NCBI GenBank assembly: GCA_021613535.1
Contig: CP075495.1
Span: 868,001 to 932,000, forward strand
Origin: Adineta vaga
Lineage: Eukaryota > Animalia > Rotifera
Reading direction: 5' to 3'
DNA length: 64,000 nucleotides
The position numbers were made by a program, and so were the translations under genes. The stretch's first letter is position 1. Each line of letters begins with the position of its first letter. Shown piece by piece: positions 39,864 to 45,854 of this stretch. The notes under the pieces were generated by a model. It did not search any database and was not told the origin of the DNA. It saw only the letters and a list, made by a program, of their open reading frames with translations.

Positions 39864-41229
39864 GTACGACTAGTAGTAAGTTTCTCGTTCTATCATTGAA
39901 TTAACAGAAATATCTTTTGTACTTATTAGCAACAACATCAGCCAGTAAATTCAACGAAATCATCTTTTTATAATTTTATTCTTTAATTCTTTTTCAGCAA
40001 CAACAACAAGTAAGTTTCAATTCGTGAAAACATCAGTTAATACTTATCAAAACTCGATTCATTCTATTAGCTACATTCACATCAAGTAAGATCACATTTG
40101 TCTTATACAAAAAATCATTATTTCTTTTTTCGTAGCAACAACAACCACAACAACCACAACAACAACGTGTAATTCGATGACTTTCTCATTTGAATTTAAA
40201 TTACTTTTTTGTTTTTTAGCAACATCATCATCTACCTCAAGTACGAGTACAAGCACAACTTCTGAAACAACAAGTAAATATTTATAGTACGTCAAATAAA
40301 ATTGTTCATACTTTTATTCTAGCAACGGAAACAACGACATCAACAACTACAGAAAGTACAACAACAACCGGTAAGGATATTCCTTAAATAATTGTAAAAT
40401 ATTGAATAATTTGTATAGCATGTTATTTCGGTGATGATTATGTTCATTTAACAGATGGAGGACAACGACAAATTAAGAATTTAAAAGTTGGCGATCGAGT
40501 TTGGTCATTGACTAGAGATGATCAATATTTAATTGAAGATCGAATTATGGTTATACCACATGCTGGACCAAAAACGCTAAGTTTGTATAAAATCATTTTC
40601 AATTGAGATTAATCATTTAAATGAATTTCTTCAAAATTAGCTGATTTTTATACATTTACAACGATTGAAGAACAAGCAATTAGTTTAACCGATACACATT
40701 ATCTCGTTATTTTTGATAAGAAAGATAAAATAATGAAAACAATTTCAGCTTCTCAAGTAACACTTGATCATCAATTAGTTATGATTAATCGTACAATAGA
40801 TTTGAAAACAATTGTATTAACAAAACGTATTGGTTTCTATTCACCAATAACAATAAGCGGATATTTACTGGTTAATAATCTTTCAACATCAGTTTATAGT
40901 GATTTGTAAATAACATTAATAATTCAACATATAAATTTCTTTCTTGTATTTTTTTCTCTAGTTTTCATGCATCCCATGATTTTCATCATGGTTTGACCGG
41001 TCCAGCTCGTGCTTATTACAATCTAACAATATGGCTTTTTGGAGATAATTATCATCCATTTGGATCTGATATATCAGAAGAATTGCATCCATTATCAGCT
41101 TTAGTTATAGTTATACATGATTCAATTCAATATTTATATTCTTCTTTACTTTTACCCTTTTGTATTATTATAGTGATCTATTTAACTCAAAGAAATTTTT
41201 ATCTAAATAAAGTTTCTAGTTTAGTTTGA
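39085..41229 (+). CDS. TM anchor + micro-exon-encoded Thr-rich stalk + Hog (Hint/SRR) autoprocessing domain, 14 exons
   Basis: Manual GT-AG splicing gives one open frame: 39085-39177, 39238-39390, 39437-39498, 39550-39677, 39828-39875, 39930-39944, 39998-40009, 40071-40085, 40136-40168, 40220-40273, 40323-40370, 40419-40580, 40641-40905, 40962-41229. Hint motifs A|CYFGDDYV...LKVGDRV, LTDTH, GFYSPIT.SGYLLVNN. Confidence 0.85.
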
Positions 41230-43222
41230 ATCCGTGTCTTTAATAAGTAATCCATATGTTCGAATGTTTTCAGGGAGTTGAACAACCCAAACATCATCAT
41301 TGGCACAGTAAATACCATCGGGATTTACAGCTACTTGTAACATAATTTTGTAAGACTTCTTTCCGAGTTTAGTGTCTATAGTAGCTGTACCAACATAAGA
41401 TTTTTCAACAAAAGTCGGTCTTGGAGAACAATAAACACCGTCCCCGTAAGCCGTCGTTCTTGCCGAACGAAATCCTTTGTTATAAATACTAATAGCAGCA
41501 TCAAAAGGTAAAGTATCAGGATTGACTTCGATGTTCAAATCAACAAAATCTTCTGCTTTTGCATTTTTTGTTCCATGAAAAGCTCTATGCCAGTTTTCAT
41601 CATCTCCAAACGGTTCTAACCATTTCTTATCGCCATATCTATTTAATACTTTCCATCCGTGTCGATTCCAACCAGTTGGTTGAATATACATTTTTTTTCG
41701 GTCCAATGGACCAATAAGAAACGTTCCAGTTTCATTTGTAAAATCTTTATCTCCAAGTTTATCTAAACATGCAACATCAAATGTTGGTCGATACAATAAT
41801 GGATGTATTTTATTCACTACAGATTGTTTGAATTGATTCTTTATTCGTTTCGATAGTTCTTGTAAATCTTCTGCTGTATTATCTTTCGGTACTGTTACTA
41901 AATAAACAAAATTCATTGAACTAAGATATACATTTGTTATAACAATATTTTTCTTCTCAGTATTATGTGCTATTGCTAATCGTTCGATAATTTGATCAAG
42001 AACTGGATGTGATCGATTTTCTTTAATTGTACGATCAAATGTTTGAATAACATTGAATTCATCTTCTTCACCAGTAAATTCATTAATATTATCTAATTTT
42101 AAAACATATGGTTTATGTTCAAAACCAATATCAGCAAAATTTCCAAATGTATTATAAAGATTAACATCTTGAGTCGAATCAAAAAATAAACATTGGTGAT
42201 TTTCATTTTCAAATAATTGATTAATAACATGATAAACTGTATCCTTTTGATTTACTTCTCCCGATGGTGATTCGGATAGAATTGATCGAGTATATTCTTC
42301 AGCTTTTCTAATATTTTCATTTTCGGGATCGGTTATTTCATCAATATCTGGTAAACTATCATAACAAGCTTTTAAATCAGCTTGTTCTTTCAAAATGATT
42401 TCTTTTTCTTCAGGTTTCACTATATCCCATAGAGAAACTGGTGGAGGAACAAAAATATAGTTGAGAAAAACATTTTCATTCTGTTTTAATCCATTAATAG
42501 ACAATGGTCGTTGATTTTCATTGCTTTCTTCAAACACATCATTTGATATTTGCTGAAAAAGATCATTAATACCGATATTTTCTTTAGTAATATTTTTTAA
42601 TAAATTTCTAATAAATAAATTATTCGAACTTGCTTCATTCTGAGCACAAGCAAATTGAATGAATGTTCCATCTATCGAATGAATTGTACATAAACCTTTG
42701 TTTTTCATCGAAGCTGAAAGAAATACAAAGAACATTTTCTGATAATTCTTAAACTAATTCCTTACAATTCGATGTTGATAAATCATTTGATCTATATGGT
42801 CTACAACAATCTAAGATAAATATATTCACATACGATGAATTCTTGTCTAATATACGTTTTAACATTCGATCAAAATTAATCCCAAAATCTTCAACATCTC
42901 TTTCTGTTTTGATCCAAGTATCATTAATCGGTATCAAATAATTTGTACCGTTTACTTGATAACCATGACCAGAGTAATAAAACAAAACTATATCACCATG
43001 TTGAATTGTCTTTGAAAAATTGATGATCTGTGTAGTCATATCATATTTCTCTAAATCCGATGCTATAACCACATCGAAACCAATTTTTATTAGTAAATCA
43101 TTGAGCTCTTGAATAGTTTCAATCGATTCATTAAGTTCATTGTCTGTTCGTTGATAACTTGCATTACCAATCAAGAGAGCGATTTTTCGATGGTTCAATG
43201 AACTTTCATCCGAAGTTGCCAT
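41221..43222 (-). CDS. Caspase-like (peptidase C14) protease fused to a PARP/NEURL4-like ADP-ribosyltransferase domain
   Basis: ATG 43222; intron 42714-42765. Caspase motifs RKIALLIGN..Y, FYYSGHG, ILDCCR; C-terminal AFHGT...YGDGVYCSP...MLQVAVNP...IRTYGLLIK. Confidence 0.85.
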
Positions 43223-43393
43223 GTCAGTATGTTCGCGTTTTATTTTTATTAACTTTAAGTTGGAAGAAAAGAAAAATGTTGTAAATATTCGTATTAACTG
43301 ATAATCAAAATTTCTTTTCTTATCAAAAGACAAATATATAAAACTGTCTTCTTATTTTTCGCCGATTCACTGTGGTATTTTTATGTGTTCGAC

Positions 43394-45144
43394 ATGGCAA
43401 ATACAAATCATCGAAAAGTCGCTTTAATTATTGGAAATGGTAATTACAATCGAGCAGAAAATAAACTAAATCAATCTGTAAAGAATGCGAATGATTTAAG
43501 TAATTTATTACAAACAATAGATTTTGATCAAATCGAAGTGCATACTGATATCAAACGAGATGACAAAATGAATGTTATAGTTCGACAATTTGCGGATACG
43601 ATTCAAGATGGAGATTTAATTTTGTTCTATTTTTCTGGTCATGGTTATCATGTGGATAATAAAGATTATTTAATACCTATTGATGACAAGCAAATACAAA
43701 ATGATCAAGATATTCTCGATTTTTCTATCAATGTTGAAAATATAATTAAATTATTTATAGAAAAGAATAAATCATATGTGACAATATTCATTTTTGATTG
43801 TTCGACACCATATCATTGGCAAAATCAATTAACATCGGATGGTTCGTTACACAGTAAAGATAATCTCATTAAACTAATATATATTTCTTTTTTAGGTTCA
43901 ATAAAAGGAATTGAGATAGATAATACAGAATCATCTATTGGCGCATCAATACAATTTATCTGTAGTAGTAGTAGTAGTAGTAGTAATCAAGTACAAGGTA
44001 ATGATCAAATTACGAATTCAAATAATATATTCAACAAACATTTACTTGATAATCTTGGTGAAGAAAATGTGACTGTTACAGATATTTTCAAACGTATAGA
44101 AAATCTTGTATATCGAGAAAGTAATCGAACACAACATCCATTGATTATCAGTCAATTGCAACAACATCAAGAAGTCTATCTCAATAAAATGATTAGTGGT
44201 ATGAAAAGCTTTTATTGAATCTCTACGGGAATATTGTTTTTATCATTTTAGTTGTACCGAATATTCCTCCCAATGCTCGATGGAAATCGAAAGCTGTTAC
44301 TATTATTGGTGGAATAATAAATGATGTCTATAGTCCACGAGGTATTTATGTCAATGATAATCAAACAATTTTCGTGGCTGATACTGGTCATGATCGTGTG
44401 ATGGCATATACAGATGATGCAAGAAAAGCGAAACGAATAAGTAGAAAAAAAGCCTATGATCGATTACATCGACCTTCGACTATGATTCAAGATATAAAGT
44501 CAAAGAATTTAATCATTTGTGATCGTGGATATCGACGAGTATTACAATGGAATAGAAAAACTGGTACATATACACAGATAATCAAAGAAAATATGGCGTG
44601 TTTTGGTCTAGCTATGGATAATGAAGGATGTCTTTATGTATCGGATACAGAACGACATGAAGTGAGACGATATGAACCTGATTGTAAACATGGAACAATT
44701 GTCGCAGGTGGTCAAGGTGAAGGTTATCGACTTTCTCAATTGAATCATCCGACATATATTTTTGTTGATGCCGAACAATCTGTTTATGTATCAGATTGTT
44801 TAAATAATCGTGTTGTCAAATGGGAAAGAGATGCAAAGAAAGGAATTATTGTTGCTGGTGGTCATGGACATGGTAAAACTGCTGGTCAATTATATCGTCC
44901 TGCAGGATTAATTGTTGATCGATCAGGTACAGTTTATGTAGCTGATCATTGGAATAATCGAATTATGCGTTGGCGTCAAGGTAAAGAATATGGTGAAATA
45001 ATTGTCGGTGATAAATATCTTGCAGGAAATGGTTTACATGAATTAAATGGTCCTGAAGGTATTGCATTTGATCGAGATGGTAATCTTTATGTTGTTGATT
45101 CTTACAATAATCGAATTCAACGTTTTGATATTCAAACTGATTGA
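43394..45144 (+). CDS. Caspase-like domain (catalytic Cys->Ser) fused to NHL beta-propeller repeats
   Basis: ATG 43394; introns 43842-43895 and 44199-44251. RKVALIIGN, FYFSGHG, IFDCST; NHL repeats such as LNGPEGIAFDRDGNLYVVDSYNNRIQRF. Confidence 0.87.
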
Positions 45145-45216
45145 ATAAATCGTAGAATTTGTTTTTATTTTCTATTATAATTTCAATTAGAGAATAAAAG
45201 AATGTCTCATTCTTCT

Positions 45217-45741
45217 TTAATTATCAGGAGAAGTAGTATCACCTTCGCCAATGTTTTTTTCCATCAGAAACACATCAAGCCATCGATTGAATTTCCAACC
45301 GCATGATTTGAAAGTTCCAACATGTGAAAAACCAAGAAATCGATGAAGAGCAACCGATCTTTCATTTAAACAATCACCAATTACAGCTATCATTTTTCGA
45401 ATACCTTCTAGTTCAGCTTTTGCTATCAATGCACTCAATAATTGTCGACCAAAACCTTGACCACATGCATCTTTATGAAAAAAGATCGATAATTCAGTTG
45501 CAAAACGATAAGCAGCACGTGGTTTAAACCAATTACACGATGCATAACCAACAACTAAACCATCTTGTTCTGCAACTAAATAAGGTAAATGTTTATTCAA
45601 AACATCTCGTCGTCGATTAGCCATTTCTTCAATTGATGGTGCTTCAATTTCAAATGTATACGTTGTATTCAATACATAATAACTATAAATTTCCGTTATA
45701 CGAACAATATCGTCATCGCGACTAGGACGAATTGTAATCAT
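45217..45741 (-). CDS. GNAT N-acetyltransferase, phosphinothricin acetyltransferase/YncA-like, bacterial type
   Basis: Intronless. FKPRAAYRF, GQGFGRQLL (acetyl-CoA binding), HRFLGF..VG...GWKFNRWLD. Confidence 0.9.
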   Translation of the reverse strand: MITIRPSRDDDIVRITEIYSYYVLNTTYTFEIEAPSIEEMANRRRDVLNKHLPYLVAEQDGLVVGYASCNWFKPRAAYRFATELSIFFHKDACGQGFGRQLLSALIAKAELEGIRKMIAVIGDCLNERSVALHRFLGFSHVGTFKSCGWKFNRWLDVFLMEKNIGEGDTTSPDN

Positions 45742-45854
45742 GATTGTTGTTTCTATAGGGAGGATAAAGTCAATGTAAAATGAAAACAAAGATATGCTCT
45801 TTCTTTTCTTTTTTTTTTGTTCTTATCAGTTGAAGAGAATAAAGACAACGTCAT

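Follow-up and report, generated by a model that had tools for sequence, protein, structure and literature searches.

Can two neighbouring members of a large family of caspase-like proteins be the two halves of one functional unit, or are they adjacent only by descent? The question is raised by a 64,000-nucleotide stretch of DNA from the bdelloid rotifer Adineta vaga (GenBank assembly GCA_021613535.1, contig CP075495.1, positions 868,001 to 932,000 of the forward strand), referred to here as the window. Within this AT-rich sequence (G+C = 29.5%), two caspase-domain genes are read divergently from start codons separated by a gap of 171 base pairs (bp), the left at ATG 43222 on the minus strand and the right at ATG 43394 on the plus strand; a first-pass annotation, made by a model from the sequence letters, had placed two opposite-strand genes at this distance, and both start codons were re-found. 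The left gene couples its caspase-like domain to a predicted PARP-type ADP-ribosyltransferase (ART) domain and the right gene couples its own to an NHL-repeat beta-propeller. Together they constitute an old, conserved, divergently transcribed and asymmetric gene pair within the bdelloid-specific expansion of Peptidase_C14 genes.

The roughly 100 divergent caspase-domain genes of bdelloids are of unknown role, and published work notes their expansion rather than their architectures. The available portion of Nowell et al. 2024 (PMC11258130) reports 101 C14 proteins for A. vaga and 69 for A. ricciae, describes them as divergent from known caspases and as a bdelloid-specific expansion, and finds that few of the genes respond to a fungal pathogen, mostly downward. 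The window pair belongs to this expansion; ART and NHL fusions, pseudo-caspases and conserved head-to-head pairs are undescribed in the same portion of that paper, and the literature on rotifer paracaspases or caspase-ART fusions yielded nothing specific and no description of the pair. The locus offers a concrete, testable unit, in which a predicted protease-ART fusion has a conserved predicted pseudo-protease-propeller partner across two bdelloid families.

Conservation of the gene pair in Rotaria

An orthologous pair is present on three assemblies of Rotaria sp. Silwood1 (L014, L015 and L016), where a 660-amino-acid caspase-PARP-like gene stands head-to-head with a 540-amino-acid caspase-NHL gene (P0265). 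Measured over three segments, the left gene of the window is 67%, 62% and 55% identical to its Rotaria counterpart and the right gene 67%, 57% and 73%, compared with approximately 41–55% for paralogues, and trees group each Rotaria gene with the corresponding window gene at 100/97 and 99/99 support. The motifs of the caspase-like domains are preserved as well, with SGHG and LDCCRPY on the ART side and SGHG and LDCSTPY on the NHL side. The four codons of DCST (GAT TGT TCG ACA) are identical in A. vaga and Rotaria, and both caspase introns occur at the matching position and phase. Because Rotaria keeps both, the pairing and the Cys-to-Ser asymmetry predate the split between the Adinetidae and the Philodinidae. 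The first-pass annotation had named loss of the pairing or of the serine in related species as grounds for abandoning its proposal, and on both counts the Rotaria locus agrees with A. vaga.

Conservation of the pairing in so distant a genus suggests, without proving, a joint function. Further, both orthologues of the pseudo-caspase keep His83 as well as the D-x-C Asp, a pattern that fits a maintained fold and interface.

Caspase-like domains and catalytic residues

Both genes encode a caspase-like domain in two exons. In the left gene, exon 1 (42766..43222, minus strand) supplies the p20-like N-terminal half of a MALT1-like Peptidase_C14 domain (PF00656, E-value 9e-24) and the first ~95 residues of exon 2 (42427..42713) the p10-like half. 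In the right gene the p20 half is encoded by exon 1 (43394..43841, plus strand; PF00656, E 1.3e-20) and the p10-like half by exon 2 (43896..44198; Pfam C14, E 0.0025, a weak match at profile positions 151-229). The PF00656 scores of 84.8 bits (left) and 74.6 bits (right) lie well above the cut-off of 21.4. The first exons are 45% identical to one another (E 4e-47) and the second exons 38%. The intron between them comes after N152 on the left and after D149 on the right, two residues that align with each other, and it falls in the same phase, so the earlier claim of homologous caspase-like domains sharing a phase-1 intron at a matching position holds.

The closest solved structure for both domains is the MALT1 paracaspase (left E 1.2e-15, right E 3e-11), with metacaspase-9 (E 0.009) and caspase-1 (E 0.15) trailing by a wide margin among sequence matches in the PDB. 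The motifs listed in the first-pass annotation, SGHG with DCCR on the left and SGHG with DCST on the right, were recovered, and alignment to MALT1 assigns roles to them. On the left, SGHG aligns to AGHG and ILDCCRP to LLDMCRK, and since the two motifs are colinear with AGHG and DMCR of MALT1, His86 (42965-42967) and Cys140, the second Cys of DCCR (42803-42805), are taken as the catalytic dyad. The left caspase domain thus has an intact His/Cys dyad. On the right, FDC aligns to LDM, so that the D-C of the right protein sits on the D-M of MALT1; for this reason Ser137 (43802-43804, codon TCG), and not Cys136, occupies the nucleophile position. A nucleophilic role for the Cys left in DCST, which the first-pass annotation had named as a finding that would overturn its proposal, was considered and is not supported by this alignment. 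His83 (43640-43642) is kept, and the same combination of His and Ser is found in the Rotaria protein P0265. Lacking the His-Cys dyad, the right protein is predicted to be a caspase-fold pseudo-peptidase and not an active member of the family.

MALT1 is activated by dimerisation, and its acidic S1 pocket includes the Asp of D-x-C. This Asp is kept in both proteins of the window pair, and the GHG His and D-x-C-R Cys motifs are colinear with those of MALT1. The likeness is restricted to the protease domain, where identity is ~30–35%: the window pair has no death or Ig domains, the C-termini are ART or NHL instead, and bacterial caspase-family proteins with TPR or WD40 domains are about equally close. 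The type-1 paracaspase architecture of death plus Ig domains is absent from the Pfam results, which contain only C14 with NHL, or C14 alone.

Outside of the bdelloids, the nearest relatives of the caspase domains (P0114-P0146) are bacterial and metagenomic caspase-family proteins, mostly with a DACR motif, that are fused to TPR, WD40, FGE-sulfatase and other domains. Such relatives are in line with published scores that place many C14 genes of bdelloids among candidates for horizontal transfer.

C-terminal domains

The remainder of left exon 2 encodes a module of ~390 amino acids (41224-42411, minus strand), comprising a front of helical and ferredoxin-like alpha/beta subdomains (41770..42411) followed by the predicted ART domain and the stop codon (41221..41769). 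The C-terminal 390 amino acids match no Pfam family of their own and nothing, solved PARPs included, in sequence-profile searches of the PDB. An AlphaFold2 (AF2) model of the module, built on 34 homologues, reached a predicted local distance difference test (pLDDT) score of 78 and a predicted template modelling (pTM) score of 0.75, with the front corresponding to model residues 1-214. Its top PDB neighbours in Foldseek were PARP16, PARP4, PARP12 and PARP10 (probability up to 0.99, E 3e-3). With VIA-align, 13 of the 14 top matches were PARP catalytic domains, aligned over model residues 215-396 with middling Z-scores (5.8-6.9), though the matches themselves were strikingly uniform, and fold neighbours across the two structure searches include PARP13, PARP15 and tankyrase. 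Within the front, model residues 97-212 resemble ACT/SEA-like folds (Z 4-5.8), and some of the PARP1-4 and PARP16 structural alignments reach into the front helices.

Sequence comparisons of the homologues point in the same direction. The Pfam PARP family (PF00644) approaches its cut-off of 26.7 bits in the homologues P0104 (25.3 bits) and P0102 (20.4 bits), over a stretch running from FHGT to GIYCSP; no PF00644 score rises above the cut-off and the left protein itself has no match. Among the 30 language-model neighbours of the left C-terminus, 25 are PARP clusters. By its modelled fold, the left C-terminus is a PARP-fold ART domain, and the first-pass annotation of a PARP-like ART in this gene is upheld by the AF2-model neighbours, the sub-threshold Pfam PARP matches in homologues and the language-model neighbours.

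A putative H-Y-Q triad can be assigned to His532 (41575-41577), Tyr580 (41431-41433) and Gln612 (41335-41337). The His and Tyr are invariant among the 34 homologues and the Gln is at least 90% conserved, all within PARP-type motifs, and the Pfam PARP alignment of one homologue spans the H and Y motifs. The predicted left ART is thus of putative H-Y-Q type, and is probably a mono-ADP-ribosyltransferase. Compared with the H-Y-E clade of PARP/ARTD enzymes, and its mono-ARTs PARP10 and PARP16, the module has its fold neighbours within the clade and its H-G-T, G-x-Y-x-S and Q-strand motifs fit H-Y-Q, but it has its own helical and ferredoxin-like front and no Pfam PARP match. The ART domain of NEURL4 has been predicted as H-Y-E[D-Q] (PMC8932523); the module shares this predicted triad type.

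The PARP-like module is mobile (proteins P0013-P0104). It occurs as a standalone protein of ~395 amino acids in many bdelloid and metagenome sequences and in fusions with caspase, ubiquitin-like, SAM and hAT dimerisation domains, and it is also present in proteins of diatoms and other protists. The combination with a ubiquitin-like domain is found in A. vaga, in the diatom Seminavis robusta and in a 731-member Atlas cluster that is commonest in the Mucoromycota. A second, independent caspase-ART fusion was observed in A. vaga (P0111, I4U23_011785, 714 amino acids) and A. ricciae (P0112), joining an intact caspase domain to the other branch of ARTs (PF01129, NAD:arginine ART type).

The C-terminus of the right protein is encoded by exon 3 (44252..45144, plus strand, including the stop codon) and is more readily assigned. 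The NHL family (PF01436) matches at E 3.5e-29 with four scored stretches over 296 amino acids, and TEN_NHL and SGL also match, in accord with the NHL propeller of the first-pass annotation.

Gene models and transcripts

The left gene corresponds to I4U23_005951 (database protein P0001, 649 amino acids). P0001 is exactly exon 1, a Ser and exon 2, with exon 2 100% identical, which supports the left gene model and its 52-bp GT..AG phase-1 intron (42714..42765), a junction that is unbridged by reads. The right gene has three exons (43394..43841, 43896..44198 and 44252..45144) separated by GT..AG phase-1 introns of 54 bp (43842..43895, in frame and without a stop) and 53 bp (44199..44251, at the caspase/NHL junction). 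Since every intron of the pair, that of the caspase/NHL junction among them, is in phase 1 (three of three), the domain exons are compatible with shuffling. The right gene was searched exon by exon, with full-length comparisons made through the Rotaria orthologue P0265, and the left gene through P0001.

Two studies were sampled for transcript contigs, and both genes have contigs in the same two RNA-like runs, X1 and X2; contigs of this kind give no expression levels. For the right gene, X1 and X2 contigs covering 43392 to 45159 remove both introns exactly, in agreement with the splicing that had been predicted. For the left gene the contigs are fragmentary (41463-43227) and none crosses its intron. 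The 171-bp spacer (43223..43393), presumed to act as a shared promoter, is without contig cover, as contigs end at 43227 and resume at 43392. The NCBI annotation of GCA_021613535.1 contains no call for the right gene (43394-45144, plus strand; L005 8006-10001). Because an expressed and spliced gene is missing from the reference annotation, family counts based on annotation are incomplete.

In one contig of run X2, 27 letters between 44673 and 44851 have no match and the ends at 44656 and 44870 are loose. This contig probably derives from a paralogous NHL gene or from chimeric joining during assembly, and does not represent an isoform.

Paralogous pairs and the wider family

Four caspase-PARP-like genes were found in A. 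vaga, and three of them have a divergent caspase-domain neighbour. Besides the window pair, these include two paralogous head-to-head pairs whose synteny is shared with A. ricciae (L002/L009 and L010/L003). In the first, the ART-side caspase has GHC and DCNG in A. vaga (L002) and GHC and DSCG in A. ricciae (L009), with partners that read SGYG/DCCR and SGHG/DCCR, respectively. In the second, the ART-side caspase has GHA and DCAK in A. vaga (L010) and GQA and DCSK in A. ricciae (L003), and the partner is a short caspase gene with SGQC/DCNK and CGQC/DCVK, respectively. The ART motifs FHGT, GVYCSP and MLQVAV are invariant in all of the caspase-ART paralogues. Because these motifs are invariant while catalytic residues of the caspase have been lost, the ART appears to be the constrained activity, with proteolysis dispensable in parts of the family. 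A family-wide rule in which the NHL partner is dead and the ART partner live was considered and rejected; it is broken by L002, L009, L010 and L003 and by the census of catalytic dyads given below, and holds only in the orthologue group of the window pair.

In the trees, the left and right caspase domains of the window are not each other's sisters, and the left one groups with other ART-side caspases. The first-pass annotation had explained the pair as an inverted duplication. A recent local event of this kind is ruled out by the 45% identity and by each caspase being closer to genes of other genera; any such duplication predates the split of Adineta and Rotaria, and the pair is an ancient arrangement. 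Caspases of the partner side fall into three orthologue pairs with good support, and the tree does not settle the branching order among them. Architectures of ART-NHL, DED-NHL (death effector domain, DED) and caspase-NHL type were also seen, and the phase-1 introns of the window pair fit them.

Several further genes lie close to these groups. The A. vaga protein P0105 (I4U23_016277, L006 6001-8066) and the Rotaria socialis proteins P0106 and P0107 fall in or near the ART-side clade with an intact dyad, and their C-termini of ~400 amino acids have no match in Pfam and do not match the PARP-like module. The paralogous caspase-ART gene is closely followed, on its downstream side, by an NHL-only frame (L002 8526-9503 and L009 10262-12446, both plus strand), annotated in A. 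ricciae (381 amino acids) and uncalled in A. vaga. The L002 cluster contains at least four caspase-domain genes (I4U23_020174 to 020177).

Do the two proteins act together?

The reading preferred here, though tentatively and at somewhat less than an even chance, is that the two proteins act together through their caspase-like domains, by analogy to MALT1 dimerisation and to caspase-8/cFLIP. The left and right proteins would associate via these domains, and whatever the propeller binds would control the protease/ART protein, either by activation or by restraint. The ART would be the constrained effector, and proteolysis an extra layer that is kept in the orthologue group of the window pair and dispensable in paralogues. 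The likely role of such an arrangement would be an intracellular recognition-plus-effector switch in innate immunity or in stress and cell-fate signalling. The sensor/executor mechanism put forward in the first-pass annotation is plausible, as an inference.

The genes CFLAR and CASP8 are neighbours in vertebrate genomes. As in that case, the window places a predicted protease next to a paralogue that has no nucleophile Cys, and the pseudo-enzyme is conserved and not decaying. The window pair differs in having no DED, in carrying a propeller on the pseudo-caspase and an ART on the active one, and in the other patterns of loss found in its paralogous pairs. Plant nucleotide-binding leucine-rich repeat receptor (NLR) pairs such as RGA5/RGA4 and RRS1/RPS4 offer a second parallel, as divergent paralogues with a common interaction-capable domain and differing sensor-like and effector-like parts; the window pair has no NB-ARC, TIR or coiled-coil (CC) domain and the analogy is one of design alone. 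If the two proteins interact, regulation of an active caspase by a pseudo-caspase would have arisen independently outside of caspase-8/cFLIP, would be tied to ADP-ribosylation rather than to cell-death substrates, and would open a way to study innate immunity or stress signalling in bdelloids. The fullest form of this proposal is unlikely: that the pair is a two-gene switch, in which the pseudo-caspase-NHL protein heterodimerises with and gates the caspase-PARP-type ART protein, kept as a pair from before the bdelloid family split and duplicated into variant pairs. If true, it would represent a new animal version of inflammasome- or cFLIP-like logic, assembled from other parts and with ADP-ribosylation as its output.

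A number of results weigh against joint action or weaken a part of the proposed mechanism. Paralogous ART-side caspases have lost the nucleophile or the His (C->N, C->A, and H->Q plus C->S), from which it follows that a protease releasing the ART is not a general mechanism of the family and that the ART does not depend on self-cleavage in all of its members. The dead partner differs among the paralogous pairs and in some both are dead; in the census, the dyad is kept in 25 of 35 caspase-NHL proteins (and in four of seven caspase-PARP-like proteins). Many caspase-NHL genes whose dyad is intact stand without a partner; none is present at the caspase-NHL loci examined (L007 and L008), nor at the caspase-ART loci L001 and L011 or at locus L006. 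The trees do not settle whether the pairs multiplied as wholes, and two genes can stay adjacent by passive inheritance after an ancient duplication. The distance between the two Rotaria genes is 1.6 kilobases, so a tight shared promoter is not conserved, and the X1 and X2 contig data give no measure of co-expression. For neither gene was an orthologue seen in A. ricciae or A. steineri, an absence that a single deletion would explain. Lastly, the propeller is the best-conserved part, at 73% identity, and is for that reason not a fast-evolving sensor; this level of identity argues for a conserved ligand or partner over a fast-evolving pathogen epitope.

Several of these results are accommodated by the strongest of the alternatives, which is nearly as probable as the preferred reading. 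Under it, the genes are independent neighbours in a birth-and-death family (~100 C14 genes in A. vaga) that an ancient inverted duplication placed side by side and that happen not to have been separated since. Each protein would act alone, for example as a homodimer, and the caspase-NHL protein would serve as a pseudoenzyme scaffold or receptor that is functionally unconnected to the caspase-ART protein. The size of the family and its description as a "bdelloid-specific expansion" in Nowell et al. 2024 (PMC11258130) are in keeping with this, as are the repeated loss of catalytic residues in both architectures, the partnerless loci of both kinds, the caspase domains of the pair not being sister sequences, and the shuffling of phase-1 exon domains that is common in the A. 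vaga genome. Against it stands the persistence of both the orientation and the exact Cys/Ser asymmetry in two bdelloid families. Additionally, divergent partners at three of four genes are far above random placement given ~101 C14 genes, although local duplication inflates such counts.

The same linkage and asymmetry serve equally well for an explanation that makes the pseudocaspase-NHL protein not a dimer partner but a substrate, decoy or guard, cleaved or ADP-ribosylated by the caspase-ART protein or competing for its substrate, as in an enzyme-target or toxin-antidote-like system. The variable linker in right exon 2, which lies between the p20-like and p10-like halves and includes the poly-Ser tract, may be a protease site, but no cleavage motif or modification site is identifiable from the sequence and the present evidence fits heterodimerisation equally; this explanation is judged improbable. 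It is very improbable that the right protein is an active hydrolase using Ser137 or Cys136 with His83, giving two active proteases at the locus: His83, the following Gly, the D-x-C Asp and the Ser are all kept in A. vaga and Rotaria, and the identical Ser codon in both genera implies an old, maintained state and not recent decay, but a Ser nucleophile is not known from any peptidase of clan CD (the caspase fold), Cys136 falls on a MALT1 Met, and N, A, G, W, Y or V at the site in other members means that the site tolerates loss.

Other features of the locus

The poly-Ser tract mentioned above is an AGT repeat (43953-43994) in that part of the right gene which encodes the loop separating its p20-like half from its p10-like half, and is not found in the Rotaria orthologue. 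Directly downstream of the right gene, on the minus strand, lies a GNAT-type acetyltransferase gene (45217-45789; annotated, 174 amino acids; Pfam Acetyltransf families), which has contigs in four of four runs.

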